NCBI RefSeq assembly: GCF_001194135.2
Contig: NC_068981.1
Span: forward strand, 136,731,397 to 136,788,478
DNA from: Octopus bimaculoides
Taxonomy: Eukaryota
DNA: 57,082 bases
Reading direction: 5' to 3'
Shown: piece by piece, positions 188 through 51,998 of the stretch
Position numbering within the stretch: the first letter of the stretch is position 1
Layout: each line of letters begins with the position of its first letter
The notes under the pieces: model-generated
The model's input: only the letters and a program-made list of their open reading frames with translations
What the model was told of the DNA's origin: nothing
The model's database searches: none
Program-made: the position numbers and the translations under genes

Positions 188-301
188 TCATCGCTAAAAG
201 GGAACTTAACTCCTGTTGTAAACAATGGTAGATTTCTCCGACTTGAAAATTGTTAAAAGTTTTGGTTAAAAATTTATTTTTACTGCTATTCGCTGGTACC
301 T
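188..301 (-). CDS. Candidate internal coding exon of an unidentified host gene (114 bp, phase 1/phase 1)
   Basis: On the minus strand the acceptor is cttatttttcctag| and the donor is |GTAAGT. Only the phase-1 frame is open, giving (x)VPANSSKNKFLTKTFNNFQVGEIYHCLQQELSSLLAM; the other two frames contain stops. Protein not recognised. Confidence 0.55.
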
Positions 302-498
302 CTAGGAAAAATAAGCTGATGAAAATACAGCTAGGGTCATGACGAATGTCCTCCTAAAATTGGAGCAACATGCGTGCTAATTTGTGGACGTGCATAAATT
401 ACATTCACATACACACACACACATCCAGCCTTTTATATATACAGCTATATATATATATAAATAATATATAAATATATGTATATATACATACATATATA

Positions 499-985
499 GG
501 CGCAGGAGTGGCTGTGTGGTAAGTAGCTTGCTTACCAACCACATGGTTCCGGGTTCAGTCCCACTGCGTGGCACCTTGGGCAAGTGTCTTCTACTATAGC
601 CTCGGGCCGACCAAAGCCTTGTGAGNNNNNNNNNNNNNNNNNNNNNNNNNNNNNNNNNNNNNNNNNNNNNNNNNNNNNNNNNNNNNNNNNNNNNNNNNNN
701 NNNNNNGGATTTGGTAGACGGAAACTGAAAGAAGCTCGTCGTATATATGTATATATATATGTATGTGTGTGTGTTTGTGTGTCTGTGTTTGTCCCCCTAG
801 CATTGCTTGACAACCGATGCTGGTGTGTTTATGTCCCCGTCACTTAGCGGTTCGGTAAAATGATACCGATAGAATAAGTACTAGGCTTACAAAGAATAAG
901 TCCCGGGGTCGATTTGCTCGACTAAAGGCGGTGCTCCAGCATGGCCGCAGTCAAATGACTGAAACAAATAAAAGAATAAAAGAAT
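499..985 (+). mobile_element. SINE family A (tRNA head + CORE-like domain + central TA/TG microsatellite + CCAGCATGGCCGCAG tail)
   Basis: A-box TGGCTGTGTGG, B-box GGTTCAGTCCC and CORE-like CACCTTGGGCAAGTGTCTT. More than 15 related copies in the window. Contains an N gap. Confidence 0.9.
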
Positions 986-1348
986 AATATATGTACATAC
1001 CTACATATATATGTATATATACATGCATATATGGGTAAAGGACATAAAAATTAGCATGAACAAAATGAGAAACGAGAACAAAAAAACAAAAACATAGAAA
1101 ATGAACTATTTTTCAAGCAATGAAAGAAACAAATAGAGAAACGAGACAGGCAACATAAAGAACGTTCCCTTCATCAGTTGTCCCTTGTTTTATCTACTCT
1201 GCGTTTTGAAGGTATGAGAAAGGTTGAGTTCAATTTGAACCTTTTTACTTTGTGGGGGTCCAAAGTTAGATTTCTAATAAAGATTCTTCATATTAAATTT
1301 GTAGCTTACTATTGCAAGTATTTTTTTTTAAACATGAAAATGTTACAA

Positions 1349-2068
1349 GTTACGAGCATTTATAGAACACATATCCTATAGAAACTCAACAAACAATTAA
1401 AGATGGAGAAGAGAAGATGTTAAAAGTTTTACAAAATTTTAATCCATGCATATGATCGTTTCAAATGGTAACACCAACATGTAAAAACATGGAAAAAATA
1501 AAATTAATTTAATTACATATTACCATTTTCCTCAGTGTAAAAAAAGAAGAATGCATCAGAAAGGTAGTATCAGAAGAATATTATGTTGTTACAGGAAACT
1601 ATATGGAGTCTGTGTCACATAACTCATTCAGATATTCATAAAATGATTATGAAAGATGAAATATAATAAACATGCTTAGGTAGTGTTGAGTCTAGTTGTA
1701 TAAAAATTTTAGTTCTTACACTACTAGACTCAACACTACCTAAGCATGTTTATTATATTTCATCTTTCATAATGATTTTATGAATATTCAAATGAGTTGT
1801 GTGACACAGATTACATATAGTTTCCTGTAACAATATAATATTCTTTTGATACTACTTTTCTGATGTATTCTTCTTTTTTGCCCTGAGGAGAATGGTAATA
1901 TGTAATTAAATTAATTTAATTATAATTAATTAAATTTTTTTCCATGTTTCTTACATGTTGGTGTTACCATTTGAAACGATCATAAAATTTTATAAAACTT
2001 TTAACATCTCCATCTTTTAATTGTTTGTTGAGTTTATATTGGATACATGTTCTATAAATGCTTATAAC
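1349..2068. repeat. ~720-bp foldback palindrome (arms ~350 bp, ~26-bp spacer)
   Basis: Arms match end to end: AGGTAGTGTTGAGTCTAGT (1678-1696) vs ACTAGACTCAACACTACCT (1723-1741); CATATTACCATT vs AATGGTAATATG; CATTTATAGAAC vs GTTCTATAAATG at the outer ends. Scattered substitutions and small indels. Confidence 0.9.
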
Positions 2069-2084
2069 ACCTTATATGTATGTA

Positions 2085-2086
2085 TG

Positions 2087-2145
<59 letters not shown>

Positions 2146-2234
2146 GCACATATATATATATATACACACACCCGTGCACATGTATATATATATACACACA
2201 CGCGCACATATATATATATATACACACACACGCG

Positions 2235-2313
<79 letters not shown>

Positions 2314-2325
2314 CTACATGTGTGT
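2085..2325. repeat. Compound (TA)n/(CA)n microsatellite
   Basis: Direct reading; source of the YI/HT-rich spurious ORFs. Confidence 0.95.
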
Positions 2326-2329
2326 GTCT

Positions 2330-2550
2330 TTGTATCTGTGTTTGTCACCCCATCACTATTTGAAACCAAGTGTTGGTGTGTTTACGTCCCCGTAACTTAG
2401 CAGTTTGGCAAAAGAGACTGATAGAATAAGTACTACACTTAAGAAATAAGAAATAAGTACTGGGATTCATTTGTTTGATTAAAACCCATTCAAGGCAGTG
2501 CTCCAGCATGGCCACAGTCAAATGACAGAAACAAGTAAAAGAATAAAAGG
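2330..2550 (+). mobile_element. SINE family A, 3' half
   Basis: Matches the family A tail (GTTGGTGTGTTTACGTCCCCGTAACTTAG...CTCCAGCATGGCCACAGTCAAATGAC). Confidence 0.85.
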
Positions 2551-2624
2551 ATATATATATATATATATGTCTTGGGAGACAAATAAGTAAATGGTTATAT
2601 CAATATTTCTCTCTTCTGCCTAAA

Positions 2625-2958
2625 AAAGGGTAAAGACCCCTTTTATCATGAATGATCATGGCAATGCACCTAGAAAGTTACCCTCTGAAGCACAAGTCCC
2701 GGCAAGGTTGTTTATGGAAGACCAGCAGTCACCCATGCACACCAGTCCCCCACTTTCCATGCCACAGATGTTATCCAAGGGAAAAGCTGGTACTACTTGA
2801 CACTAGTGATGTTGCAACTCATTTCTACAGCTGAGTAAACTGGAACAACACGAAATAAAGTGTCCTGCTCAAGAACGCAACACACAGCCCAGTCCAGGAA
2901 TTGAACTCACTACTACATTATTGTGAGCCTGGTGCTTTAACCACCAAGCCATGCACTT
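2625..2958 (-). mobile_element. SINE family D (tRNA head + CORE/V-like domain) with tail Y
   Basis: Minus strand TGGCTTGGTGGTTAAAGC...GAGTTCAATTCC...TTCTTGAGCAGGACACTTTATTTC...CAGCTGTAGAAATGAGT, then a tail ending GGGGTCTTTACCCTTT. Confidence 0.75.
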
Positions 2959-3118
2959 TCACCTCTTTACCCTTCACCCTCTTCTACCTAACAAACACCA
3001 TGATTTAACGATACTGGATACTTACTCATATCAAGAATAAGAAACAATTCTCAACCGCAATTTTAAATTAATCTAGCAACACCATCAGATCAGTATTTTA
3101 TTTTATATATATTTTATG

Positions 3119-3498
3119 TGGAGGCGCAATGGCCCAGTGGTTAGGGCAGCGGACTTGCGGTTGTAGGATCGTGGTTTCAATTTCCAGACCAGGCGTTGTG
3201 AGTGTTTATTAAGCGAAAACACCTAAAGCTCCACGAGGCTCCGGCAGGGGATTGTGGCGAACCCTGCTGTACTCTTTCACCACAACTTTCTCTCACTCTT
3301 ACTTCCTGTTTCTGTTGCACCTGTATTTCAAAGGGCCAGCCTTGTCACACTGTGTCACGCTGAATATCCCCGAGAACTACGTTAAGGGTACACATGTCTG
3401 TGGAGTGCTCAGCCACTTGCACGTTAATTTCACGAGCAGGCTGTTCCGTTGATCGGATCAACTGGAACCCTTGTCATCGTAACCGACGGAGTGCCAAC
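3119..3498 (+). mobile_element. SINE family C with tail X
   Basis: TGGAGGCGCAATGGCCCAGTGGTTAGG head, B-box-like GGTTTCAATTTCC and tail CCTGTATTTCAAAGGGCCAGCC...CCGACGGAGTGCC. Near-identical to 38681-39049. Confidence 0.9.
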
Positions 3499-3898
3499 AT
3501 ATATTTTATACATATATTTATTGCACCTTTTTTTCTTTTCTTTAAATTTCATTTCAAATTTCAAAATAAATAAACAAACACTAGACTACGTTTTCATAAA
3601 TTTATTTTAGATGTAAACTGAAACTTAAAACTGAATCAAAACATTATTAAAGACTAATAGAAATATGTTTGCTATATGACCACTCCCTGTTATATGTAAT
3701 CAGAGTAAAATAGTTGACCTAATATATTAACTGAAAAGAATATCTTTCTCAGCTTATGTAGTTGGTATTGTATGTATTTTGCACTGTTGGCTATACTATT
3801 GTAGCTACTAATATCAACAGTATATTGTGTTGTTATATAACTATGTATGCATATGTGTTGTGAGTTTTTGTGAATATATTTTTGATGCATTTCTTTAA

Positions 3899-4170
3899 CC
3901 CATAAACTGCGATAGTCCACCTTAGTGGCCAACGCGACAGTGCGACAGGCCACGTGCGTGGCCACGGAAGTAGGGCATGATCTGAGCTAATTTTGATGAC
4001 GTATAATGTATGCACACGATACCCTTTCACCCCAGAAACAGTGTAGCCAATCACAGAAGGTGTTAAGAAACACTGAGTATTTTTTTCGAGTGATAGATCG
4101 ATGTTGATCTTTACCCAAAATAGGCTCAGCAGTTCGTGTTACATACAGCAAAATCCCAGCAGTTTATGGG
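3899..4170. mobile_element. piggyBac-type non-autonomous element (272 bp)
   Basis: TTAA|CCCATAAACTGC ... GCAGTTTATGGG|TTAA: perfect 12-bp TIR, CCC termini and TTAA target duplication (3895-98, 4171-74). Confidence 0.9.
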
Positions 4171-5523
4171 TTAACTATTTTACTGAATTAGATTCTTCAT
4201 ACAACCATAAACTACCCAGCATATGGCATGATAAATAAAGCTGAGCTGTTGTACTTAATATCCCGATAACATATAAAAATACCAAAACTGTATATTGCAT
4301 AATAATCATTAATAAAAGAAAAAAAAATTAAATTTGGATTTTCTTGCTTCTGTGATTTGAGATATCAGAGCAATCAAACAAACAAACAGAATAGAAACAG
4401 AGGCACCCAATATTTTAACTGTTAGATTTATTAGTTGGAAGAATGGTGGTGTTGATTGTTGGTGCAAAAATGAAATAAATAAATAAGAATATTAAAAAAA
4501 AAAAAAACAAACAAAGTAATTTGATCTTGATTCATTTTTGAATTTCAATTTCTGAAATTTATTTCAATTAATTTTTTTTTTTTTTTATTATTAATCATCT
4601 CTTGATTTCAGTTTATAAAAATATGAAGAGAATAGAAAAGAAAGTGAAAACAAATTTGAGAAGTAAAAAAAAACGACAATCTTAACACATAATGGACAAT
4701 TGTAACCTCAACAATCCACTTTGGAACATAATAATTGGATATATAACATTTAAAGAAGCGCTAATTAAGAATAACAGCTCTGGATTTTTATAAAGTTATA
4801 GAAGAGGAAAAATAATTGTGTGAGAAATAAACATCTTCAAGTCAAAAGCATTTCTAAAAACAATGTTCTATCTATTATGCTTTCAGAAAATAGTGGCTTA
4901 TTTTTCCACCTGGGTTACCTCATTAATTTTAATGTTAGTAAATAGAGAAAGTTTGAAATAAGAGCTTGAAGTATAAAAATATTGAATTACTTGAGTAAAT
5001 TTCTAGTTACAACATTTATAAAGTTGTCAACACCGACCAGCATATTTGATCCTTGAACGAACTACACACAACACACTGGAGATAATTAAAGTAATTCAGG
5101 TGGAAAAATTAGCAAACTGTTACATTTTCTGAGGATATAAATTGCAATCAAGTCTTTTGTTATGTATTATACATATTTTTAGACTAAAACTTTCCATTAT
5201 TGAGAAGTTTTAGCACAGAAGTTCAACAGGCTAATCAGAGGTTTATTGAATTGACAAAAATGAGAATTGCAAAAAGTTTTAGTGTAATCAGCATTTGAAA
5301 GCTTACATCCTGTTCACCGAGACGGTTCTAGTAATAGCTTCCTGAATTTTGTTCTAAGCATGGCTGTGCAGTTAACCCATTCATTTCTAAACCACAAGGT
5401 TCTGGGTTCAGTCCTACTGTTAAGTACTTTTATGTAGTGTCTTCATTTGTTGCACCAGGCCAACCAATGCCTTTGAAGTTATTGATGGAAAGTGTACAGA
5501 GACTGTTATGTTTATATATAACA

Positions 5524-6295
5524 GGCGCAGGAGTGGCTGTGTGGTAAGTAGCTTGCTTACCAACCACATGGTTCCGGGTTCAGTCCCACTGCATGGCACC
5601 TTGGGCAAGTGTCTTCTACTATAGCCTCGGGCTGACCAAAGCCTTGTGAGTGGATTTGGTAGACAGAAACTGAAAGAAGCCCATTGTGTGTGTGCGTGTG
5701 TGTGTGTGTGTGTGTGNNNNNNNNNNNNNNNNNNNNNNNNNNNNNNNNNNNNNNNNNNNNNNNNNNNNNNNNNNNNNNNNNNNNNNNNNNNNNNNNNNNN
5801 NNNNNNNNNNNNNNNNNNNNNNNNNNNNNNNNNNNNNNNNNNNNNNNNNNNNNNNNNNNNNNNNNNNNNNNNNNNNNNNNNNNNNNNNNNNNNNNNNNNN
5901 NNNNNNNNNNNNNNNNNNNNNNNNNNNNNNNNNNNNNNNNNNNNNNNNNNNNNNNNNNNNNNNNNNNNNNNNNNNNNNNNNNNNNNNNNNNNNNNNNNNN
6001 NNNNNNNNNNNNNNNNNNNNNNNNNNNNNNNNNNNNNNNNNNNNNNNNNNNNNNNNNNNNNNNNNNNNNNNNNNNNNNNNNNNNNNNNNNNNNNNCTGTG
6101 TCCTCCAACATCGCTTGACAACTGATGCTGGTGTCTTTATGTCCCCGTAACTTAGCGGTTCTGCAAAAGAGACCGATAGAATAAGTACTAGGCTTACAAA
6201 GAAAAAGTCCTGGGGTCGATTTGTTCGACTAAAGGTGGTGCTCCAGCATGGCCGCATTCAAATGACTGAAACAAGTAAAAAGAGAAAAAGAGAAA
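5524..6295 (+). mobile_element. SINE family A, full length (gap in central microsatellite)
   Basis: Near-identical head and tail to the copy at 499. Confidence 0.9.
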
Positions 6296-6309
6296 GAGAT
6301 ATATATTGT

Positions 6310-6705
6310 ACTCGTTTCAGTCATTGAGGTACTGCCTTAAAGGGCTTTAGCCAAAACAAATTAACCCCAGAACTAATTTTTTAAAACCTGGTACTTTTTC
6401 TATTGCTGAACTGCTAAGTTATGAGGACAAACAAACCAACATCAGTTGTCAAATTGTGGTGTGGGTTAAACACAAACACAAAGACACCCATAGATGTTTT
6501 ACATGGATACATACATGACAGGCTTCTTTCAGTTTCTGTTTACCAAATCTGCTCACAAGGCTTTGGCTGGCTTGAGGGTTTAGTAGAAGACATGCCCAAG
6601 GTGACACACAGTGGGACTGAACCCAGAACCATGTGGTTGGAAAGCAAACTTCTTATCACAGACCCCCACCTGTGCCTCTGTGTGTATGTATGTGTGTGTG
6701 TGTGT
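6310..6705 (-). mobile_element. SINE family A, diverged copy
   Basis: Reverse complement of family A head and tail; tail-to-tail with the 5524-6295 copy. Confidence 0.8.
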
Positions 6706-6706
6706 G

Positions 6707-6738
<32 letters not shown>

Positions 6739-6745
<7 letters not shown>

Positions 6746-7673
6746 AAACTACCTATCGCCATTAGATACAAAACTGCTATCGCCATTCTTCTCATTTAAA
6801 TATAAACAAGTGCGGGCGTAGCGGAAAACATCAACCTTGTCATCACGTGACTGATCATTATTCGAATCGGCAACTTCTTCGAACCATTCCCGCCAGAACG
6901 CAAACTGACCAATCACGGCCCCTAANNNNNNNNNNNNNNNNNNNNNNNNNNNNNNNNNNNNNNNNNNNNNNNNNNNNNNNNNNNNNNNNNNNNNNNNNNN
7001 NNNNNNNNNNNNNNNTCTGTTCCGTGTACCAGACGACAGCAGCAGCAGCAGCCAGCGACACATCAACAGCTTCGTCCAACGATGCCGCCACATCAGCAAC
7101 ACGAGTCTACGACTACTAACCAGCATCATCGTCAAGAGCAACACGATTCTACGATTACTACTAACCAGCATCAATCTCCACCAGCGTCTACACGACTTTC
7201 TATGTACACCAAACTAAACCAACGCGGCACATCTCTCTCTTCGATTCTGTTAGGTGACTCAGCTTCACCACGATAAATAAACAGACAAGAATTACAGCCT
7301 GCGATAAACGTCTGTCCTCAAGATTCCGGCGCGGCATAGAAGCCAACACACAACTAGTGCTAAGCTCTGCCACACAGCCTCAACTCATTTCTCATACAGA
7401 CTCATCCTATCGTGTACTCAAGAATTGGTATAAATGTTCACGTGTACTGACTCTCTTTTCTATCTGCTGTAATATTTCACATACATGTATCACTTACACA
7501 CGCTCTTTTCTTTGTACGACGGCCTGTCTTTTATTATGTTCTTATATGTCGCATTCACACTCTCAGATACACATACATCTTTAACGCTACAATAAATAAT
7601 TCTGTTATTCATCTCATACGGTTGTCTTTTCTATCGTCTCATTACTGGCTATTTGTGTTATCGTAGTATAACA
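6739..7673 (+). mobile_element. Probable solo LTR (~935 bp including a 90-N gap)
   Basis: Begins TGTAGT and ends TATAACA (TG...CA), with AATAAA ~80 bp before the 3' end and short internal direct repeats (CTATCGCCATT x2; CTACTAACCAGCATCA x2). Flanks TATA/TATT within a TA microsatellite. No PBS or internal domain follows. Confidence 0.45.
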
Positions 7674-7806
7674 TATTTGTATATCATCTTTGATATATAT
7701 TTTGTGTTCGACCGTGTGACGCGTTTAAATAAAAGGAGTCCTTGTTTTTCCATTCGTCACCATTTCTCCTTTTTGAGTTCGCACGGTCGTTCTTACATAT
7801 ATATAT

Positions 7807-8179
7807 AGGAGGAGTGGCTGTGTGGTAAGTAGCTTGCTTCCCAACCACATGGTTCCAGTTCAGTTCCACCGTGTGGCACCTTGGGCAAGTGTCTTCTATG
7901 ATAGCCTCGGGCCATACAAAGCCTTGTGAGTGGATTTGGTAGATGGAATCTGAAAGAAGCCCATCGTATATATGTATGTTTGTGTGTCTATGTTTGTCTC
8001 CCCCACTATCGCTAGACAACTGATGCAGGTGTATTTACGTCTCCGTAACTAGCGGTTCGGCAAAAGCGATCGAGAGAATAAGTACTAAGCTTACAAAGAA
8101 TAAGTCCTGGGGTCGATTTGCTCGACTAAAGGCGGTGCTCCAGCATGGCCACAGTCAAAATGACTGAAAACAAGTAAAT
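7807..8179 (+). mobile_element. SINE family A, full length
   Basis: Complete head, CORE-like domain, short microsatellite and tail. Confidence 0.9.
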
Positions 8180-8507
8180 ATGTAAATATATATATATACA
8201 TATGGTTTTGAGTACTATTTTATCCGACAGCCAACATTGAACGAGCATATATAAAACTTTATGCATTTTAAAGTCCAATACAACAATTGCCGAAACAAAA
8301 TATCGATAACACACTGTAAAGTAGAAGCTCAAACATCAACCACAAATAAACACACGCTTCTAACTTAACTAACCAGGTATACATGTGGTGATTAACCGAT
8401 ACCGACATAAAAGCTATTCAGTTATTCATTGAATGAAACTATAAAGTCATATTAGTACATACGTACGAATGAGTGTTAAGTGTGTAGAATAAAAGTAGTT
8501 TCTTCAT

Positions 8508-8542
<35 letters not shown>

Positions 8543-8717
8543 TTCGTTGTTTGTTTTTGTGGTTGTACCTGTTTTACAAAAGATCATAGGCAAAAGTCAT
8601 CGACAACACTAAAAAACGTCAGCAGATTTCGATTCTTTCTTTCTTTCTTTAGTAGTTTTACTGGTGTTGTTTTGGTTTGTTTGTTTTTTTTTTTCCGTTG
8701 TTCGTTTGGAGTCTCAC

Positions 8718-8730
8718 GTCTGTCAATCAT
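8718..8730 (-). CDS. Candidate alternative first coding exon (MIDR, phase-1 donor)
   Basis: caaacATG ATT GAC AGA C|GTGAGA. A at -3, in unique UTR-like sequence. C+AG joins the 188-301 exon in frame as Gln. Confidence 0.35.
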
Positions 8731-8943
8731 GTTTGTATTGACGTAGACCGATGTGAGAAGCGTATTTAATAATGAATGATAACAGCTTTTTGCTTTCAAG
8801 CAAGTATCATTAAAATGATCAGACTGTTAAAATACAGAACACACACACGCACACACGAGTGAGTGGACAAACGAAGGAAAGAGGCACTCAGCTAGAAGTT
8901 ACATGTATTGTTATGTAAAGCATGGAACCAACTCAAACTGTTT

Positions 8944-8979
<36 letters not shown>

Positions 8980-9145
8980 TGTGTATGCACGCGCGCGCGC
9001 ACGTACATTCATATACACTCGGACAACGATTACCAGTCTAAATAGTATTTCCGTTCAGATATAGCACAAAGAAATAGAAAGATTAGTTCTCATATATCGA
9101 CAGTTCTTGAATAAATACATACATATATACACATATATATGTGTA

Positions 9146-9272
9146 CAGCGTGTCCACAAAGTCTGGGTACGTGGAGTAAATAAAATCATAACATAAACAA
9201 TTAAATGTAAGAAATAATAATTTCTTAAAGTATGTGTTAATCCCCATGTACCCAGACTTTGTGGACACCCTG
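9146..9272. mobile_element. Tc1/mariner-type MITE (127 bp)
   Basis: TA|CAGCGTGTCCACAAAGTCTGGGTAC ... GTACCCAGACTTTGTGGACACCCTG|TA: 25-bp TIR with 1 mismatch and TA duplication. Confidence 0.9.
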
Positions 9273-9280
9273 TATATATG

Positions 9281-9614
9281 CGTGGCACCTTCGGCAAGTG
9301 TCTTCTATTATAGCGACGGGCCGACCTTGTGAGTGGATTTGGTAGACGGAAACTGAAAGAAGCCCGTCGTATGTATGTATGTATGTATATATATATATAT
9401 ATATATATATGTTTGTGTGTCTGTATTTGTCCCCCCAACATCGCTTGACAACCGATGTTGGTGTGTTTACTTCCCCGTAACTTAGCGGTTCGGCAAAATA
9501 GACCGATAGAATAAGTACTAGGCTTACAAAGAATAAGTCCTGGGGTCGATTTGCTCGATTAAAGGCGTTGCTCCCTGCATGGCCGCAGTCAAATGACTGA
9601 AACAAGTAAAAGAG
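9281..9614 (+). mobile_element. SINE family A lacking its tRNA head
   Basis: Starts at CGTGGCACCTT immediately after the MITE; remainder intact. Confidence 0.85.
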
Positions 9615-9932
9615 TATAGACAGATAGATAGATAGATAGATACATGTAAGTGGTGCGCGCGCACACAGACACAGACTCACACACGTGTGTGTGTCTCTGC
9701 GTGCCTGTGAATGTGTCATGTATGTGTACATACATATATACATACGAATGCGTGTGTGAGTGCGCGCGCTTTCTGAAGTTCAATTTACAACGTCTGCAGC
9801 TCTGCTAAATAGTTCCATCATTGTGAAGGTCGATACCATTTATATGTTAACAGTTCACTTCGTGTGTGTGTGTGTGTGCTGCTTTTGATAGTGACGACGG
9901 TTGTGATAATGGTAGTGAAAGCCAGCAGTCAC

Positions 9933-10005
9933 CCTCTTCAGATCGAACACTTGCTAAATCATCCACTAACTTCTCTTGTCGGTTCCCCTGTACCTCGCTC
10001 GCCAT
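9933..10005 (-). CDS. Candidate alternative first coding exon (MASEVQGNRQEKLVDDLASVRSEE, phase-1 donor)
   Basis: ggaatATGG start context, 24 open codons plus G|GTGACT, with CpG-rich unique sequence upstream (10006-10135). In frame with exon 188-301. Confidence 0.45.
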
Positions 10006-19770: not shown

Positions 19771-20177
19771 CCCGAAAGCCTAACAACAATACTAAAATGC
19801 ACATACCTTTTGTTCTAGGTATATATGAGGCATCTGCATTTTGAACTCCGAAAAAGAAAAGTATCAAAATGAAAAACGAGTTGGCTGATTATATTGCGCA
19901 TGCAAAAAGATGTATTCTTAAAAAAAAAATTTCGAGGAAATGGAGTCTCGGACGAGGAGCGCTAAATTGTAATTATGCTATAAAAATTAATTAAAATGGA
20001 TGGCCATGAGTGCAACGGTTTCTTAAAAATACGGCCATTTAGAACATTATGAAACAGCGGCTAAACCCCCGATTTAAACAGGAAATTAAAAATATATATA
20101 ATTGCCTTTCATTAACATAATCGTAATCCTAAAAGGGACTTTTCAGTTAGACCCATTTTATTGAAAATTTCTTAACC

Positions 20178-20356
20178 GCAGCGTGGCTGTGTGGTAAGAA
20201 GCTTGCTTCCCTACCACATGATTCTGGGTTCAGTCAGACTGCATGGCGCTTTGGGCAAGCATCTTCCACTAAAGCCTCGGGCCGACCAAAGCCTTGCGAG
20301 TGGGTTTGGTAGACGGAAACTGAAAGAAGTCAGTCGTGTGCGTGTGTGTGTGTGTT

Positions 20357-20391
<35 letters not shown>

Positions 20392-20690
20392 TCAGATTGG
20401 AGCCTGGTGCAGTCTACTGGCTTGCCAGTCCTCAGTCAGACCGCCCAACCCATGCCAGCATGGAAAACGGACGTTAAACGATGATGATATATGTGTGTGT
20501 GTGTGTCCCACCATCGCTTGACAACCGATGTTGGTGTATTTACGTCCCCGTAACTTAACGGTTCGGCAAAAGAAACCGATAGAATAAATACTAGGCTTAC
20601 AAGGAATAAGTCCTGGGGCCGATTTGTTCTACTAAAGGCGGTGCTCCAGCATGGCTGCAGTCAACTGAAACAAGTAAAAGACTAAAAGAA
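20178..20690 (+). mobile_element. SINE family A, full length, with nested insertion
   Basis: Head and tail intact; a foreign ~100-bp segment sits in the central microsatellite. Confidence 0.85.
20388..20488 (+). mobile_element. 3' tail of another retroelement (RTE-like) nested in SINE A
   Basis: ...CCAACCCATGCCAGCATGGAAAACGGACGTTAAACGATGATGAT ends in a (GAT)n tail typical of a 5'-truncated non-LTR insertion. Confidence 0.6.
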
Positions 20691-20875
20691 TTAGGCATAG
20701 GCGTGGCTGTGTAGTAAGAAGTTTGCTTCCCAATCACATGGTTCCGGGTTCAGATTGTGGTTTTCGGAACTAACGTGAAAAATTACATCTGTGCAGAAAC
20801 CTTTAAATAAAATAGGAACAAGAGAGTCAAACCTAAACCCTGAACTTTTAACTCGCCAGATTTTTGGTTTCTTAT

Positions 20876-21882: not shown

Positions 21883-21931
21883 CGTCAGTCATCGTTATTT
21901 GGCAGATTGACTCCTGTCGCACCATAAACAT
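21883..21931 (-). CDS. Candidate alternative first coding exon (MFMVRQESICQITMTD, phase-1 donor)
   Basis: 16 open codons plus G|GTAAAG in unique non-repeat sequence. In frame with exon 188-301. Confidence 0.4.
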
Positions 21932-26721: not shown

Positions 26722-27135
26722 CAGAGCCGGATTTAGACCTAATAGGACTCCTGGGTCAATAGATCTTTTTCGGGTGGAGATGCGCGACGATTTTGCTAAT
26801 TCCAAACAAAAAGGTCTCCATTAAATGCAAGGGCCCCAAACAGTTTAGAGGGGGGTCCCATTAAGTGTAAGAGCCCCAAACAGTTTGGAGAGGGCTCCAT
26901 TAAATGTAAGGGACCCCTAACAGTTTGGTGAGAGAGCTCCTTTAAATGTAAGGGTCCCAAACAGTTTGATGAGGACTCCATTAAATATAAGGGTACCACA
27001 CACTTTGGAGAGGGCTTCATTAAATGTAAGGGTCCCAAACAGTTTGAATAAGGCTTTGTTAAATGTAGGGGTCCCAAACAGTTTCAAGAAGGTTCCATTA
27101 AATGTAAGAACTCAAACACTTTGAAGAGGCCCCAA
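26722..27135 (+). mobile_element. hAT-like left end followed by a 39-bp minisatellite (8 units, ~26817-27130)
   Basis: The terminus CAGAGCCGGATTTAGACC is followed by units of consensus CTCCATTAAATGTAAGGG(T/C)CCCAAACAGTTTGGAGAGGG. No matching right end found. Confidence 0.6.
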
Positions 27136-33066: not shown

Positions 33067-33297
33067 TCCTAAGGTATTTTTCGGTGTTATTATCATGATT
33101 ATTATTCAAGTCACTGCCTGGAATCGAACTTGGAATCTTGGGGTTAGTAGCACGCGCTCTTAACCACTACGCCATATGCCCGTGCGGGCATATGGCGTAG
33201 TGGTTAAGAGCGCGTGCTACTAACCCCAAGATTCCAAGTTCGATTCCAGGCAGTGACTTGAATAACAACAACAACAACATTGAAAAATACCTTAGGA
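33067..33297. repeat. Head-to-head palindrome of a tRNA-derived element (arms ~115 bp, 2-nt spacer)
   Basis: ...TACGCCATATGCCCG-TG-CGGGCATATGGCGTAGTGGTTAAGAGCGCG...; each arm has A-box TGGCGTAGTGG and B-box GTTCGATTCC. The arms still pair at TCCTAAGGTATTTTTC/GAAAAATACCTTAGGA. Confidence 0.9.
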
Positions 33298-33327
33298 ATG
33301 AGAACCTAGGTTCGAAATTTCCCCAGG

Positions 33328-33367
33328 ACACCTGAAGAAGGCTGGAGAGTATATCAGCCAAAACGTT
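33328..33367 (+). ncRNA. Degenerate minimal type I hammerhead ribozyme motif (Penelope-type)
   Basis: ACAC-CTGAAGA-A-GGCTG-GAGAGTATAT-CAGCC-AAAAC-GT-T: intact CUGAAGA, 5-bp helix II and palindromic ACGT helix III. G12 is replaced by A (CpG-decay type) and the helix I 3' strand is missing. Confidence 0.6.
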
Positions 33368-34566
33368 AACAACAAACAAGATGAGGANNNNNNNNNNTAG
33401 TAGCACGCGCTCTTAACCACTACGCCATATGCCCGTGCGGGCATATGGCGTAGTGGTTAAGAGCGCGTGCTACTAACCCCAAGATTCCAAGTTCGATTCC
33501 AGGCAGTGACTTGAATAACAACAACAACAACATTGAAAAATACCTTAGGAATGAGAACCTAGGTTCGAAATTTCCCCAGGACACCTGAAGAAGGCTGGAG
33601 AGTATATCAGCCAAAACGTTAACAACAAACAAGATGAGGACAAATATCCGTCAAATGTAAATAATGTAAATAATGTACATAATTCTCTCAGATATAGAAC
33701 TGTAATATCAAAAGAATATCTTTTAATACAGCGCAACTCATTAGCATTCTTAAAGAGCAATAAGAATATAAGCAAGAATGGAAAACAAAATTCAAATGTT
33801 TTAATGCAGGTACATTTATGTATTATCCGCTTTCATGTTTTGTATATTCGTACTGGAATTGATACTATATAGGAATATGCCTATGACGCGAAGTGTTTTA
33901 ATTTTTTTAATTTGATAAAGGGACCTGACTTTAGAAATTTGTTCTCCATTCTTGCATATATATATATATATATATATATATAAATTGTAATTCTTCGAAA
34001 CATATGTCGGAAATAAAAGTATGCAGTTAAAATATGCGTTTTACTCCATTCATTAANNNNNNNNNNNNNNNNNNNNNNNNNNNNNNNNNNNNNNNNNNNN
34101 NNNNNNNNNNNNNNNNNNNNNNNNNNNNNNNNNNNNNNNNNNNNNNNNNNNNNNNNNNNNNNNNNNNNNNNNNNNNNNNNNNNNNNNNNNNNNNNNNNNN
34201 NNNNNNNNNNNNNNNNNNNNNNNNNNNNNNNNNNNNNNNNNNNNNNNNNNNNNNNNNNNNNNNNNNNNNNNNNNNNNNNNNNNNNNNNNNNNNNNNNNNN
34301 NNNNNNNNNNNNNNNNNNNNNNNNNNNNNNNNNNNNNNNNNNNNNNNNNNNNNNNNNNNNNNNNNNNNNNNNNNNNNNNNNNNNNNNNNNNNNNNNNNNN
34401 NNNNNNNNNNNNNNNNNNNNNNNNNNNNNNNNNNNNNNNNNNNNNNNNNNNNNNNNNNNNNNNNNNNNNNNNNNNNNNNNNNNNNNNNNNNNNNNNNNNN
34501 NNNNATCTATATATACATGTAGATGAAGTTATGTACATACATGTACATATATATATGCATATACTC

Positions 34567-41761: not shown

Positions 41762-42325
41762 CATTCGCTCTAACTATTTTTGCCACAAATAATGGTGATT
41801 TCTTTTGTCACGCACTCGTCAGATAAGGAGGACATAACAAAAATTTGTGGGAGAAAGAAGGCGTCTGACATAAAATCGAGTGGGAAAAAAAAGGTGAGAG
41901 GAAATTAGATGAAAAGTATATATAGTGTTATGGGAGAATCCTGAATGCTCTCATGTGACTGAATGTGGACTGATTTCAATAAGAACTGAGTGAACTGTCG
42001 GTGGGTGGTTGAACAGTGAATCGCGTTCGTGTTTGGCGTTAATCGCAAAAAGCTTGTTCAAACGGAGTTGTGTCAATTGTGGGTTGAGGTTAAGTTGAAG
42101 TAATTGTTTGAATTTGTATCGGTGTTCATTTGAACGCTTTTGTCAACTGTTCTGTGCTGCCTTGAAGCGGCTGGCATGGTGATGTGTGAGGATTGCGATT
42201 CTTCGGGGCTGTCTTCTTCGGAGGAGGGGCTGGTGGGGGCAGTTGGTGGGGCGGAATGGACGGAAGAATGAACAGGAGGAGGAGCTACTCAAGTGCCATG
42301 GAGGTGGAGAGTGGGGAGGTCGACC
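41762..42325 (-). other. GC-richer unique segment, possible retroelement relic
   Basis: Pro/Ser-rich minus-strand frames broken by single stops (e.g. APPTAPTSPSSEEDSPEESQSS...). Flanked by gaps; family not recognised. Confidence 0.3.
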
Positions 42326-43724: not shown

Positions 43725-43963
43725 TCTCTATGGGCGCAAAGCTTGAAATTTTGAGGAAGGGGGCTAGTCGAAATGAGTACCAGTATTTTGTTAGTACTTA
43801 TTTCATCGACCCCGAAAGGATGAAAAGCAAAGTCGACCTCGGCGGAATTTGAACTCAGAACGTAAAGACAGACGAAATACCGCTAAGCATTTCGCCCGGC
43901 GTGCTAACGTTTCTTATTTCTTTATTGCCCACAAGGGGCTAAACATAGAGGGGACAAACAAGG
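43725..43963 (-). mobile_element. SINE family B joined directly to the tail of a next unit at a gap edge
   Basis: ...CGTGCTAACGTTTC|TTATTTCTTTATTGCCCACAAGGGGCTAAAC..., followed by a 400-N gap. Confidence 0.7.
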
Positions 43964-45152
43964 NNNNNNNNNNNNNNNNNNNNNNNNNNNNNNNNNNNNN
44001 NNNNNNNNNNNNNNNNNNNNNNNNNNNNNNNNNNNNNNNNNNNNNNNNNNNNNNNNNNNNNNNNNNNNNNNNNNNNNNNNNNNNNNNNNNNNNNNNNNNN
44101 NNNNNNNNNNNNNNNNNNNNNNNNNNNNNNNNNNNNNNNNNNNNNNNNNNNNNNNNNNNNNNNNNNNNNNNNNNNNNNNNNNNNNNNNNNNNNNNNNNNN
44201 NNNNNNNNNNNNNNNNNNNNNNNNNNNNNNNNNNNNNNNNNNNNNNNNNNNNNNNNNNNNNNNNNNNNNNNNNNNNNNNNNNNNNNNNNNNNNNNNNNNN
44301 NNNNNNNNNNNNNNNNNNNNNNNNNNNNNNNNNNNNNNNNNNNNNNNNNNNNNNNNNNNNNNNNNNNNNNAAGAGTTCACAAAATCATTTAGAACAGTGC
44401 AGGACGATACAATGCGGGAATGCATAAAGAAACGTGTAATTAAAAAAGAACAAGAGAAAATATATATTTCAGCAATGAAAAATTCCCCAAGTGAGGGAGA
44501 TTTCAGAGGATTACTTTTGGAAATCTCACCCACGAAAACACGGTCTCTCTGACCACTGAGGCAAACAGCCTTCTCCCTGTTAATGGTACGAAGATGATAA
44601 TAGAAATTATAAAGACAGATTCGAACAACATGGAAGTAACCGGGGACAAGAAAGCTTGTCTCGGGTTGTGGTCCGACAAAAAGCATAATTAAACCGGTTA
44701 CAAAACATCAATATCGTATAACAAAATAATAATAATAATAATAATAATAATACCCCCTTCGCCATGATTCCATGAACAGTCCTGAAGAAGAAAAGGAGCG
44801 GGTGGGTTCTATGGTCGGTGGGGTGTTGTGGTGTTTACTTCCCAAGAAATCCAACAACAATAGTTCGACTGTGACGAGTAAAATCGTTGAAATTTCTTTT
44901 TTTTTTTTTAGATGTGTTCTTTTTTTTAAATATTTTTGTTTTGTCTGATTTGTTATTTTGCTTGGAATACAAAATAAATAAATAAATAAATAAAGTCAGA
45001 CCACTGGTGGTGGTCGTGGATGGGAGATTAGTTGGTTGGTACTGGACATCTCGCTACAACTGACCGATAATATTTGGATAGACGGACAAAAGAAGATAAC
45101 AATCTATCAGAGGAAATAACAAAGTGAGAACAACATATACTTACATACGCTC

Positions 45153-45191
<39 letters not shown>

Positions 45192-45992
45192 ACGCACGCA
45201 TACACACACTACCTTGCACAACTGCGTTCTATTTGTTTTTCATATTTTTCTTTTTTTATGCCGTATTTCCTTTTGGGTCCATTAATTTGTTCGAAACCAC
45301 ACACAACACAAACACTGAAGGAAGAAAAANNNNNNNNNNATATACACAATACACACTACATATATATACACACTATATATATATATATATATATATGCAC
45401 ATACACGCTATATATATACACACATATCCGTACACACATACATACACACACACACACATACATACACACACACACATACATACATATGCACACACACACA
45501 CACATCTATGTAAGTACACACATACTGCACTGGCATGGATTTACTCTAACGCATTATCGATTCTCCTACTCTACGACGCCTCATCTATGAAAGAACATAT
45601 ACACGTGTTCTTGCATAGTTATTAGGCGTCGAGCGGTTGGAATCGATCAAGAACTGGGAATAAGCACCTTCTAGCAGTAGTTTTAGTCATGTTCCTCTGC
45701 ATCCCGAGTTCGAATCCCACCAAAGTCAGAGGCAATAGATCGCAGAACCTGTGGAGCATCGGACAAAATGCCTGCGGTATTTATGTTTCAGACTGAGGTG
45801 ATCCCTGAGTTGAGAACATCGCTTTCAATTTCTGCTAATATAAAAAGATTTTTAAAAAACCTTAAAGTTGTGTATCTCAACCATTTTTTTTTTTTGTGGG
45901 AGGCTTATTTTGGACGCTTTTTGGTTCTTATTTTACTCGACTGGACCCTCATAGTCACTCGGTGTTTAAATAAGTCCATTATATTTTTATAA

Positions 45993-46828
45993 TGGCTGTG
46001 TGATAAGAAGCTTGCTTCTCAGCCACATGGTTCCGGGTTCAGTTCCACTGCGTGGCAGCTTGGGCAAATGTCTTCTATTATAGCCTCGGGCCGACCAAAG
46101 CCTTGTAAGTGGATTTGGTAGACGGAAACCGAAAGAAGCACGTGGTATANNNNNNNNNNNNNNNNNNNNNNNNNNNNNNNNNNNNNNNNNNNNNNNNNNN
46201 NNNNNNNNNNNNNNNNNNNNNNNNNNNNNNNNNNNNNNNNNNNNNNNNNNNNNNNNNNNNNNNNNNNNNNNNNNNNNNNNNNNNNNNNNNNNNNNNNNNN
46301 NNNNNNNNNNNNNNNNNNNNNNNNNNNCTTGACAACCGATGTGTGTATGTTTACATCCCGTAGCTTAGCATTTCGGCAAAAGGAGCCGATAGAAGTCTCG
46401 GGGTCGATTCCTTCGACTAAAAGGCAGTGCTCCAGCATGGTCGCAGTCAAAATGACAAACGAGTAAGAGATGAAAAATAAATATTATTAGGAATCTTATG
46501 AAAAAAGGCTGATAAAATAGTTTGTGTATTATAGGTACAGTTGTGTGGTAAGAAGCTTGCTTCCCAACCACATGGTTCCGGGTTCAGTCCCAATGCGTGG
46601 CACCTTGGGAAAATGTCTTCTACTATATCCTCGGGCTGACCAAAGCCTTGTGAGTCTACGTCTTCATAACTTAACGGTTCGGCAAAACTGACCAATAGAA
46701 CGAGTACTAGGTATACAAAGAATAAGTCCTGGGGTCAATTTCTTCGATTAAAAGAAAAGAAAAACCTTTAAGGCGGTGCTCCAGCGTGGCCGCAGTCAAA
46801 TGTCTGAAACAAGTAAACGAATAAAAGA
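45993..46828 (+). mobile_element. Two tandem SINE family A copies (second lacks the central microsatellite), interrupting a hAT relic at ~45868-45990
   Basis: Heads at ~45993 and ~46535. The preceding TCTCAACC...TTCTTATTTTACTCG...GGACCCTCATA matches 55431-55540. Confidence 0.8.
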
Positions 46829-47451
46829 AAAAAAGATCGCCGGGATCTTCACGTTTTGAGTACTCCACCTAGGTCACCTCTGCCTTTCGACCTCATTGAC
46901 GGTCGATAAAATATCAAGTATACCAGTCAAGTATAACGATCGATTTAAATATTCCTTTAAAACATCCGAGCTGTGAATGGAATTGTAATAGAAAACTTTG
47001 CCTTTCATCTCTCCAGTACTAGTACAGCTAAATATTGTTTCATTCAACAAGCTAAACATTGTGTTTAGCTGTTGAATGAATTTACCACACAGCTTCATGT
47101 CATTGTGCTGATGTTGCCGATAATGTTAAACACCCGGGTCAGGACTAACCGAATAGGTCTATGATTGTTGTCGTTCCATTTGTGACCATCCAGTATATCA
47201 GTGACTATAATGTTTAAATGTAACCCTATCTATCTATCTGTCTGTCTATCTCTATCTGTCTACCTACTTCTCTATCACTATATGTATATAGCTATCCATC
47301 ATATCCTGTGATCGACGTCATTCCAACTTTGACCATCCAGTGTCACTTCAAATCAGTGACTATACTTTTTCGAATCGCGTCTGAAGGCGGTAGGATGTGA
47401 TTTTGAGAGATATTGGCTGCTCTTTCTGGCTAGTTGAATGATTGCATAGAA

Positions 47452-47568
47452 TAGGCATGGACAACCTTTTTCGCAACAAGCGGGCCACACTGCCAAAAAT
47501 ATTCAAGGTAAATAGTTCGATAGGCGTCCAATTCAGAAAAGCCTGTGGGCTATAGGTTGACTAGCTTA
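47452..47568. mobile_element. Degenerate hAT-like MITE
   Basis: TAGGCATGGACAACC...GCGGGCCACA ... GCCTGTGGGCTATAGGTTGACTAGCTTA. TSD not retained. Confidence 0.5.
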
Positions 47569-48039
47569 GAGACTCCCTCATTGGTTTGTTAAGTTAATGT
47601 AAGAATTTACTGTTCATGGCAGAATCGGTTGGGTCCTGGACAAAATATTCAACGGTGTTTAGGTATGTGCCCCCAGTTCAAGTTCAAATCCCATCGAAAT
47701 CAATTTTGACTGTTACTTGATTAATCGACCCAAGAATTGTGAAAGACAAAGAGAACTCGAGTTGATCCTAATCAATTATATACCCCATCCCCTCATCTGT
47801 GAATATGTGGACTCGTGTTCATTTCAGTCATTATTGTAATACCCGGAACGGTACAGAAATCGTGATCCGGTTTCGATTTACAGTTGGAATTTCACTTCAT
47901 CATGTCGCTAATGCTTTCGTAGAAAACATACTGGATGTTAAAAATCCTTAACTTTACTATTCTGCAAAATCAGTTTAAACCACCGCCACTAGTAACACAA
48001 GCCTTTGTTATCAGAGTCGATCTTGAGCCAACGAGGTAG

Positions 48040-48245
48040 CTTCGGTTTTTATGTGGTTACTGATCTGCTAAAAATACTAGTCAAATCTCTCACAAACCAT
48101 ACTTTATTGTCTTTGGAAAGGACAGATGGATAATGTAGTGTGGAGTATAACTATGCTATGAAAAGGAAAAGGCAGGATAGTCACGACTTGAAAGCCATTG
48201 ATCATAGGTCTGCGCAATCAGGGCTGACTCGGGAATAAACGAGAG
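48040..48245 (+). mobile_element. Dispersed repeat family E
   Basis: TATGTGGTTACTGATCTGCTAAAAATA...GATCATAGGTCTGCGCAATCAGGGCTGAC. Confidence 0.7.
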
Positions 48246-49029
48246 GAATACACTAGCTAATATGTAGTTTATTAAAGGGCGCATTAGCTTGTGTATTCCT
48301 AGATTGCCATGTCTAACAAACGAGATTGTCAAGGTGAGAAAGTCTTTGGCTGGCTCGATCAGGGCTTTCCTCGGGTTTAACAACAACTACAACCTGGTCT
48401 TGATACATTGCTAATGCCCACTACGCTGCTTATGACATTGGGGGAAAGTATGAACATCACAACAACTCATTCATGGTACAGACCTCAAAATCTGAAGCAT
48501 AAGCCTGTACTTAAACTGTTTTCTTTCGGACCAACGTGGATGCCTTCTATGTGGTTGCTGACATGCTAGAAATAGCAGTCAAATGTTCTTTAAATGTTCG
48601 TTTTTAAGTAAAAACGATGTACACAATAAACAATGCAATCTCTCCACTCACGGAAAATAAAAGCAAAGTGCGCATTGGATATCACAGTCCTTCTTACAAG
48701 GGGATGGTCATGGTTGGAATGCTTCTGTTCGCAGAGTTCCACACTTTCGTTAGTTATCATCAATGAATACAGAACTTATCTGGTCCATACGATAAATACC
48801 AGTAATGTACTGAGGGACAGGGAGGTTGATTCATATCAGTTACATTTCTTCTTATAGCTTTAACATATTGTTAGAAAACAGTACCGAAAACTATGTCTTT
48901 AAATTAGTTTACACCACATTTCTGATGATAACGTGTGTTTATTCAACACTAAGTATTTCCGAGTCAACAAGGAAGCTTCTTCTATGGTGGTCGGTCTATT
49001 TGCTAGAAATAGATTGTAAATCACCCAAG

Positions 49030-49392
49030 CTTGGCTGTGTGGTTAAGAAGCTCGCTTTGCAACCACGTGGTTTCCGGTTCAGTCGAATAGTGCGGCGCCT
49101 TAACCAAGTATCTTCTACTATAGTCCCGGGCCGATCAATGCGTTGAGAGTGAATTTGATAGACAGAAACTGAAGCCCACCGTGTGTGTGACCCCACCCCC
49201 AACAACCACTTGACAACTGGTGTTTGTTTATATCCCCGTCACCTAGTGGTTCGGTAAAATAAACGATAGAATACGTATCAGATTTGAAAACAACAACAAG
49301 CCCATAAGTACTGGGGTCAATTTGTTCAACTTAAAACCCTTCAATGCAGAGCTCCAGCTTGGCCGCAGTCCAATGCCCGAAACAAAAGATAA
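49030..49392 (+). mobile_element. SINE family A
   Basis: Head TTGGCTGTGTGGTTAAGAAGC through tail. Confidence 0.8.
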
Positions 49393-49871
49393 TATATAAA
49401 AGATAAACCAGTCTACTGCGTTAAAAAGGTGGACATATTGGATGGCACCCCTTCTCCAGCCTTTTAACAAAGAGAGAAATCAGCGCCTGTGATTCTTCAC
49501 AAGGTTTCAGAGACTGGGAAAAACGGAAGGTATCCTTAAACCAAAAATCTGGGTTCAAAATGCTTGCAACAAAATGGGTTTTACTAAATGTATCTTTGGT
49601 GCTAGGTGGTGGTGTTTAACCCAGTGAAGGGATGAAGTCTACCAAGCAAGTAAGCCACGGCCGGATTTGAACTCAGAACGTCAAGAACCGAAGCATAAGC
49701 TACAAGGCATCGCATCTTGAGTGGTGCGCTAACGCTTCAGCGAATTTAGCGCCTTTGAATGGTAGTTCATTTATGAACGTAGGAAAAATAAAAGGCAAAG
49801 TTGACCAGAGCGGGATTTGAACTTAGAACGCAAAAGAAAAACACCGGAATAAATAAATAAATAAATAAATA

Positions 49872-50437
49872 GGAGCAGGCGTGGTTGTATGGAAAGAAGG
49901 TTCTTCCTAAGCACATGATTCCAGGTACAGTTCAACTGTTTGGCACTTTGGGTGAATGTCTTCTACTATAGCCACGGGCCAACCAAAGATTTGGGAGTGG
50001 ATTTGGTAGAAAGAAATTGAAAGAAGCCCATNNNNNNNNNNNNNNNNNNNNNNNNNNNNNNNNNNNNNNNNNNNNNNNNNNNNNNNNNNNNNNNNNNNNN
50101 NNNNNNNNNNNNNNNNNNNNNNNNNNNNNNNNNNNNNNNNNNNNNNNNNNNNNNNNNNNNNNNNNNNNNNNNNNNNNNNNNNNNNNNNNNNNNNNNNNNN
50201 NNNNNNNNNNNNNNNNNNNNNNNNNNNNNNNNNNNNNNNNNNNNNNNNNNNNNNNNNNNNNNNNNNNNNNNNNNNNNNNNNNNNNNNNNNNNNNNNNNNN
50301 NNNNNNNNNNNNNNNNNNNNNNNNNNNNNNNNNNNNNNNNNNNNNNNNNNNNNNNNNNNNNNNNNNNNNNNNNNNAAATTTCTCAAAGCAGTGCCCCAGC
50401 ATGGCCGGAGTCTAATGACTGAAACAAACAAACGATA
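49872..50437 (+). mobile_element. SINE family A spanning a gap
   Basis: Head before the gap, tail after it. Confidence 0.8.
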
Positions 50438-51684
50438 AAGATAGAAATATTTTATTTTATTTTCGTTAATTTATTTGTTTTTTTTTGTTTTTGTTTTTTG
50501 TTTTGTTTTTGGGTTGGAATATGACAAAAAATCCCCGCGAGAAATATTAATCATACGACTGAGTTACTTCTGACCTCCCATAAAAAAAAAAATTATTAAA
50601 CGACCCTGGAGAGGTGAACGGCAAAGTTGACCTCGGTGGGATTCGACACCGAAACCAGAAGTAGGAACAGACAAATACCGCAAGACATTTCGTCTGATAC
50701 TGAAATAACTCTCTCAGTTTGCCACCTACTAAGATTATAGGTAATTCTATAAACCCTCTAATTGAAAAGACGAGATGATCGTATCTAGGTTTTTTTTTTA
50801 AAAAAGGTCTGTTCGATCACAACTGGCAGCTAAGCAACATCAGTTTCTTTCTTTCCCCTGAGGTATGGAACTTTGAAGGACAGCTATTCCAGAATTCCGC
50901 CTCATATGGGGAGAAAAGAAATAAGTTATACATACATACACGCATATACATATATACACACACTAAAGAAGAATGATAGTCATCGTATGCCGTGAGTTGT
51001 TGACTGAACTCATTCATATAAACAAATTATTCCAAGCTTGGAATTTAGTATTACCAAAATATTATTGATACGAACTAATTCGCGGGCTTCTTTTAGGGGC
51101 CTGTTTTCTAAGATATTATTTATGCTCAGCGGCTTTCAATTCAGTCACATTTACATACGTATTTAAAAAGAAACTATTAGAATTTATCGTGGATTTTGTT
51201 TATGAATATGTCCATAATATTATGCTATTTAAAACAACACGGTTTTCCATTGTGTGTACGCTTCTCTTCCTCGTATGTTTGTGTATATATCAATGGAATA
51301 TATCTCCAGACCAAACATGAACACCACACAGACATATGTATATATATATTCATTCATTCACTCACTCATACAATACATATAACACACACGTGTGTAGGTG
51401 TATATAAATATACAGGCACACATCTCGTACATAAAGATGCATAGATATGCATAAATATACATATGTATATATTGCACAAATACACGTATATGAATTTGAA
51501 TATATACCACACATATATAGAGAGAAAGAAGGGGAAGAGAGATCAAAACAGCAAGATTTTTTTTAATGCAAATTCTAAGTGTAAGTAAAAAAAGATGAAA
51601 AGACAATGTATATTATAATGATAAATAATAAAAATCGAACTTGAAAATGTTGTTATATTGAACCAAATTTGGAAGCACAGAAAA

Positions 51685-51902
51685 ATGGTAAATGTGGGGG
51701 GAAGATATAAACGAAGAATACAATCGCTTCACATGTTGCGAAGAATAATAACAACACGTGCTCGCCCTCTCTTGTTGTTAGTGGTGTTAGCATCCATTCT
51801 CCTGCTGTTCTCGAAGACTATGAAGACTATAAGAAAAGATAATGAGGGGCGAGACAAACAGTTGGAATCGCAAGCCGATAATAATAAGGTTAAATGTCTT
51901 CG
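51685..51902 (+). CDS. Possible first exon of a type II membrane or secreted protein (competing interpretation)
   Basis: MVNVGGRYKRRIQSLHMLRRIITTRARP-LLLLVVLASILLLF-SKTMK...: basic N-terminus followed by a hydrophobic stretch that is not microsatellite-encoded. Possible donors at 51888/9 and 51902/3 (CG|GTAAAT). No downstream + strand exon found. Confidence 0.25.
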
Positions 51903-51976
51903 GTAAATAAATCTTCCATCACCTACCTTCGAATCCCGTTTTGGTCGTAGACGTTTGTGAAATTCCATCATTTTAC

Positions 51977-51998
51977 CCAAAGCATTGTCAAAGTGCAT
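51977..51998 (-). CDS. Candidate alternative first coding exon (MHFDNAL, phase-1 donor)
   Basis: gaccATG CAC TTT GAC AAT GCT TTG G|GTAAAA, with CT-rich UTR-like sequence upstream. A second, phase-0 donor AAG|GTAGGT lies at 51927/51926. Confidence 0.35.

Follow-up and report, generated by a model that had tools for sequence, protein, structure and literature searches.

The 57,082-nt stretch of the Octopus bimaculoides genome analysed here (NCBI RefSeq assembly GCF_001194135.2, contig NC_068981.1, positions 136,731,397 to 136,788,478 of the forward strand; hereafter the window) very likely corresponds to the 5' part of a minus-strand gene of about 290 kb whose product, a scaffold protein with one PDZ domain, belongs to the tamalin (GRASP)/CYTIP family. 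The gene is LOC106880114 in O. bimaculoides, LOC115218042 in Octopus sinensis and the 'GRASP-like' CAI9716077/8 in Octopus vulgaris; its range is 289 kb in O. bimaculoides, 283 kb in O. sinensis and 179 kb in Argonauta, and annotated ranges of this size are compatible with a first intron longer than 52 kb. Both the gene and its alternative-first-exon isoforms are already known from the RefSeq annotation of two Octopus species. The coding features found in the window and the intron that surrounds them are as follows (a slash within a sequence marks an exon boundary).

51927 to 51998, minus strand: exon 1a, a real alternative first coding exon of 72 nt (ATG at 51998-51996; peptide MHFDNALGKMMEFHKRLRPKRDSK), which ends in phase 0.
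51925 to 51926, minus strand: the GT of the exon 1a donor (AAG/GTAGGT), the position of the junction being set by protein and mRNA alignments.
44754 to 44765, minus strand: exon 1b, the probable second annotated first coding exon (ATGGCGAAGGGG, encoding MAKG), in phase 0, with its GT at 44753-44752.
1 to 51924, minus strand: part of the intron after exon 1a, which extends out of the window on the left and includes exon 1b as well as short interspersed nuclear elements (SINEs), microsatellites and 16 gaps.

Exon 1a was identified by protein searches, according to which the ATG at 51998 is the annotated start codon of the PDZ protein. When the read-through open reading frames (ORFs) of four first exons proposed in a preliminary description of the window were used as queries, the only matches were two PDZ proteins, P0001 ('uncharacterized protein LOC115218042 isoform X2 [Octopus sinensis]') and its Argonauta hians counterpart P0002, both of which start MHFDNALGKMMEFHKRLRPKRDSKV. 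In tblastn, amino acids 1-25 map to 51998-51924 with 100% (P0001) and 92% (P0002) identity; the rest of the P0001 protein was not found in the window and, beyond exon 1a, neither was any other part of P0001-P0012. Three Octopus species have the same exon 1a peptide, which forms the N-terminus of LOC115218042 isoforms X2 and X3 and of LOC106880114 isoform X2. The mRNA contig L003, of cuttlefish type, aligns to 52002-51925 (77% identity, E 4e-11), and GTGATCCCAAAAGTC (VIPKV) follows immediately. Since it passes straight from exon 1a into the VIPKV codons, the junction after 51927 is fixed. On the donor matrix used throughout (a generic, approximate table for metazoans rather than one trained on cephalopods), the exon 1a donor scores 5.83 bits and so ranks among the best of its strand, where only 3 GTs score at least 6 and 30 score at least 4. 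The preliminary description, made from the sequence alone, had placed an MHFDNAL- first exon at the same ATG and was right about this start codon. It was mistaken about the donor and the phase, as tblastn, the isoforms and L003 all indicate: the donor that it proposed at 52.0 kb (G/GTAAAA, G at 51976) scores -1.21 bits, and the real exon extends 50 nt beyond it to end at 51927 in phase 0.

The cluster of P0001 comprises 11 RefSeq/GenBank products, its content being LOC115218042 isoforms X1-X6, LOC106880114 isoforms X1-X4 and two O. vulgaris 'GRASP-like' proteins. The isoforms of this cluster are identical from VIPKVSSVGEDL on, and their differences are confined to the preceding N-terminus, of which Octopus has five types: MVYIVQ... 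(47 amino acids), MHFDNAL...DSK (24 amino acids, with or without VKFYQ), MSFTSY... (19-20 amino acids), MAKG and ML. In all annotated isoforms from the three Octopus species and Argonauta, as well as in the cuttlefish-type transcripts, the first exon is joined directly to an exon starting VIPKVSSVGE-. The gene thus has a genuine array of alternative first coding exons, all of them spliced in phase 0 to one shared exon. LOC106880114, LOC115218042 and CAI9716077/8 are the same gene, with a 100% identical exon 1a peptide, the same strand, very long introns and the same set of N-termini. Accordingly, the general proposal of the preliminary description, namely one minus-strand gene with alternative first coding exons that give different N-termini, is borne out by isoforms and transcripts. 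So is its view that the window is mostly 5' intron with the body of the protein lying outside, as only the parts belonging to exons 1a and 1b were found in the window.

The use of this array can be modelled in the following manner. The gene contains several mutually exclusive first coding exons, each with its own ATG and 5' splice donor and without an acceptor. Promoter choice, the most likely mechanism, would select one of them, each presumably having a separate promoter. The chosen first exon would then be spliced in phase 0 to the common acceptor of the VIPKVSSVGE- exon, which leads into the PDZ domain. The outcome would be a different short N-terminal peptide ahead of the same PDZ scaffold, and these peptides might tune the localisation or regulation of the scaffold. 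The two exons located in the window (51998-51927 and, very probably, 44765-44754) conform to this arrangement: they occupy separate sites on the same strand, and both have an ATG and are followed by a donor. Outside the window, P0013, P0131 and P0132 are shorter isoforms (216-219 amino acids) of the same gene with a different C-terminus (...NILQDKQQVQKEDVEDNK); as they end after the coiled-coil-like region with this other C-terminus, the gene also has alternative 3' ends.

Among the Logan assemblies of sequencing runs are contigs of 1.2-1.5 kb that encode full-length homologues (P0014, P0015). Given genes that extend over 179 kb or more, contigs of this length can only be spliced mRNAs. The P0014 cluster includes a protein from Acanthosepion (Sepia) pharaonis. 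Four N-termini of cuttlefish type, all followed by VIPKVSS, are present among L001-L003, P0014, P0015 and P0133-P0143: MHFDNAL..., MVYFVY..., ...ML and ...MAYE. As the same N-termini occur in octopus and in cuttlefish-type transcripts, the first-exon array would predate the octopus-cuttlefish split, and comparison of the sequences indicates that it is conserved across coleoid cephalopods. The choice between N-termini in this tamalin/CYTIP-like scaffold is therefore of long standing and may have a function. Alignment of the cuttlefish-type 5' untranslated regions (UTRs) with the window was obtained only for the coding part of exon 1a, and the cuttlefish N-terminal peptides gave no significant match to the window. 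Some cuttlefish-type gene calls begin at upstream non-ATG codons, for example MKRKQDEDMAYE from TTG.

The second annotated first exon, MAKG, is very probably encoded at 44765-44754, as judged from a pattern match. The pattern ATGGCNAARGGNGT (MAKG followed by its donor) occurs a single time in the window, at 44765-44752 on the minus strand, which is the strand of the gene, and is expected 0.00 times according to 100 shuffles of the window. Isoforms X5 of O. sinensis and X4 of O. bimaculoides read MAKG/VIPKVSS. This exon had not been listed in the preliminary description. The MVYIVQ... and MSFTSY... exons, the common VIPKVSS exon and the VKFYQ micro-exon were all searched for and none was found in the window; the ML exon is too short to be placed by sequence.

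The protein contains a single copy of the PDZ domain (Pfam PDZ, E 4e-10). The best PDB matches of this domain are tamalin (2pnt/2egk, E 1e-15) and CYTIP (2z17, 4e-9), ahead of NHERF and SNX27. The domain is followed by a charged, heptad-like stretch, RKVELHDRYIKLKNILREKKRELKLLNEQEQ, in the position where a cytohesin-binding coiled coil (leucine zipper) would be expected for this family, and the proteins end in -EVTRL or -EITRL, C-termini that fit the class I pattern S/T-x-hydrophobic. A C-terminal PDZ-binding motif is a feature of tamalin. Homologues from molluscs, arthropods, annelids and brachiopods are named GRASP-like, CYTIP-like, TAMALIN-like or ssp6, and PMC9983901 describes GRAS-1 of Caenorhabditis elegans as the worm homologue of GRASP/Tamalin and CYTIP. 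What the octopus protein shares with vertebrate tamalin (GRASP)/CYTIP, C. elegans GRAS-1 and insect ssp6 is the single PDZ domain.

Variable-first-exon arrays are found in the clustered protocadherins and in UGT1A, where the variable exons are large and each specifies entire functional domains. As in these systems, the first exons of the octopus gene exclude one another, presumably have individual promoters and are spliced to shared downstream exons. In contrast to them, its variable exons encode only 2-47 residues and no recognisable domain, and they number about five rather than dozens.

The preliminary description had drawn the array differently, with four phase-1 first exons converging on one common exon close to the left edge of the window. 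The segments concerned are listed below.

188 to 301, minus strand: proposed 'common phase-1 exon', unsupported; most likely an intronic frame that is open by chance, with splice-like motifs on either side.
8718 to 8730, minus strand: proposed 'MIDR' first exon, unsupported; 13 nt, with a donor of 1.84 bits, a score reached by 109 minus-strand GTs.
9933 to 10005, minus strand: proposed 'MASEVQGN' first exon, unsupported as drawn; 73 nt, donor of 2.6 bits.
21883 to 21931, minus strand: proposed 'MFMVRQES' first exon, unsupported; 49 nt, with a donor of 1.52 bits, a score reached by 130 minus-strand GTs.
51977 to 51998, minus strand: the MHFDNAL- segment as first drawn; 22 nt, donor of -1.2 bits.

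All these motifs are literally present, at chance level. The segment 301-188 does have the acceptor, the GTAAGT donor and the frame open in phase 1 only that had been ascribed to it. The four segments from ATG to GT exist, each leaving one nucleotide, with an A at -3 at 8.7, 10.0 and 52.0 kb, and all five places are single-copy within the window. This last property, described earlier as 'unique islands', is not distinguishing, because 71% of the sequence outside gaps likewise occurs only once in the window. The minus strand offers 1142 combinations of an ATG with a phase-1 GT, at least one being available to 431 of its 869 ATGs, and 95 of the combinations score at least 0 bits. The MIDR-, MASEVQGN- and MFMVRQES- N-termini occur in no annotated or assembled protein and are unsupported as starts, and the four proposed phase-1 donors (1.8, 2.6, 1.5 and -1.2 bits) are wrong. 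A low donor score alone does not exclude a site, since the annotated MAKG donor scores poorly. The annotated octopus models lack 301-188 and three of the four starts proposed earlier; otherwise they do not differ substantially from the gene described here. The three starts and 301-188 are most likely chance combinations of ATG, GT and open frame inside the intron.

A part of the 10.0-kb proposal can be recast in the proper phase. The ATG at 10005 might open a real, unannotated first exon of 12 nt, 10005-9994 (MASE), which would be the counterpart of the cuttlefish MAYE/VIPKVSS. Indeed, the stretch 10005-9994 reads ATGGCGAGCGAG/GTACAG, so that a phase-0 donor, GAG/GTACAG, is present at 9994/9993. 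The cuttlefish-type L001 and L002 read ...GACATGGCCTATGAG/GTGATCCC where the window reads ...AATATGGCGAGCGAG/GTACAG, and tblastn pairs KRKQDEDMAYEV with RSKIDRNMASEV at 50% identity. The 300 nt around the site rank seventh in the window by CpG count; over the whole window, CpG observed/expected is 0.84, a value that is uninformative as a promoter indicator. However, the tblastn match is not significant (E 2.7), the phase-0 donor scores only 0.47 bits, no octopus isoform begins with MASE, and the 5' UTR of L001 has no nucleotide similarity to the 10.0-kb region. Moreover, the annotated MAKG exon is an equally good counterpart of MAYE, with 8 of 12 nt identical (by eye) in each case. A MASE exon is thus improbable; if it were real, at least six promoters would have been conserved since the octopus-cuttlefish split.

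The segment 301-188 was to be the exon shared by all products. It is 114 nt long on the minus strand, with the acceptor TTATTTTTCCTAG/A and the donor GA/GTAAGT, and lies in a frame that is open from stop to stop over 353-147. It is open only in phase 1 (VPANSSKNKFLTKTFNNFQVGEIYHCLQQELSSLLAM); in phase 0 it reads RYQRIAVKINF followed by a stop at codon 12, and hence cannot be coding downstream of the real first exons. The 68-amino-acid open frame around it has no words in common with any of 5.8 billion protein clusters. Its own 37-amino-acid peptide had no match among 1.8 billion representatives in an exhaustive phmmer search, which has power for near-identical matches only, and is included in none of the annotated or assembled isoforms of the gene. 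A claim of a common exon at this place is therefore untenable: the segment is in no product, the real exons end in phase 0 and the common exon is the one that starts VIPKVSS.

It could still be asked whether 301-188 is a real unannotated exon that does not extend the protein, either a rarely included poison cassette or part of a non-coding transcript. It lies on the strand of the gene and within its first intron, has a good polypyrimidine acceptor and matches GTAAGT exactly on the intron side of its donor. Against this, the donor totals only 0.69 bits because its exon side (TGA/) is poor, the sequence is AT-rich and flanked by microsatellites, and no product contains it. Segments of this kind also arise by chance. 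If a segment counts as comparable when its acceptor is no worse, its donor is exactly GTAAGT and it is open over 110 nt or more, the minus strand has two, 301-188 and 35526-35318, and composition-matched random sequence yields 0.35 per window, with one or more in 33% of trials. The other one, 35526-35318, crosses a GA/RE microsatellite and is clearly spurious, and it serves as a negative control. An exon of either sort at 301-188 is thus highly unlikely, and a chance open frame is the preferred explanation. As for the complete model of four phase-1 first exons at 8.7, 10.0, 21.9 and 52.0 kb spliced to 301-188 and leading to an unrecognised protein, it can be set aside almost entirely: its motifs exist, and it is correct on the use of alternative first exons by this gene and on the ATG at 51998, but the MHFDNAL exon has its phase-0 end at 51927 and is followed directly by VIPKVSS in all isoforms and in the mRNA contig, the 301-188 peptide is without match, the three other N-termini are in no protein and the motif combinations are at chance level.

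Some observations weigh against the reading preferred here, that of a tamalin/CYTIP-like gene with phase-0 first exons and chance motifs in its intron. The donor of exon 1b is weak (-2.84 bits on the generic matrix), and the use of this exon in the window, which is probable, rests on a 14-nt pattern match together with the annotated isoforms. A rare or non-coding exon would escape protein databases, which hold annotated or assembled products only. Finally, 4.1 kb of the span is made of gaps.

With these points taken into account, the isoform set, the position and junction of exon 1a and the absence of the proposed common exon from all products are observed directly. The case carries little weight as a discovery, the gene being annotated and alternative promoters being common in animal genes. 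It illustrates that, in the AT-rich, repeat-filled introns of cephalopods, an ATG, a GT and an open frame come together far too frequently for exons to be defined by eye; one protein search sufficed to find the real exon, which exceeds the proposed one by 50 nt and differs from it in phase.

The gaps deserve some attention. Between 188 and 51998 there are 16 of them (4,130 N), none of which touches a proposed or real exon; distances are consequently estimates, and small exons could be hidden. Around the 10-N gap at 33388-33397, two 243-nt copies (33145-33387 and 33398-33640) are 100% identical, and inverted repeats near it are 98-99% complementary. This gap has the appearance of two overlapping contigs left unmerged, or of a local misassembly, and because of these duplicates gap sizes and local order in the window are unreliable.

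The rest of the window is rich in repeats. An interspersed element, about 0.5-0.8 kb long and probably a SINE, whose head resembles a tRNA (GGCTGTGTGGTAAG...GGTTCCGGGTTCAGT), is present in at least 12 copies on both strands (for example 497-1000, 5522-6306, 7803-8204, 9268-9641, 20172-20753, 45981-46844 and 49021-49417), and many assembly gaps are located within or beside these copies. Scans of the window for tRNAs (ARAGORN) and with Rfam found nothing, these copies not being called either. A Pfam search of the ORFs of the proposed exons and of the 20 longest non-SINE ORFs gave nothing above the cut-off, only low-complexity RE-repeat noise. An exact look-up of ten raw ORFs of the window matched no entry of the collection. 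A near-perfect foldback, which could be a hairpin element or one resembling a miniature inverted-repeat transposable element, is formed by 1540-1706 and 1713-1879, two inverted arms of 167 nt that are 92% complementary and 6 nt apart. A trinucleotide microsatellite of about 0.55 kb at 53836-54423 (GTA/GTG/GGT units) produces, on each strand, homopolymer-like ORFs of 150-184 amino acids; it is also the source of the strong GC skew seen between 52 and 54 kb. Lastly, the minisatellite at 26809-27124 consists of about eight copies of a 39-40-nt unit, with 60-79% identity to the reference copy, and gives a repetitive ORF of 93 amino acids.

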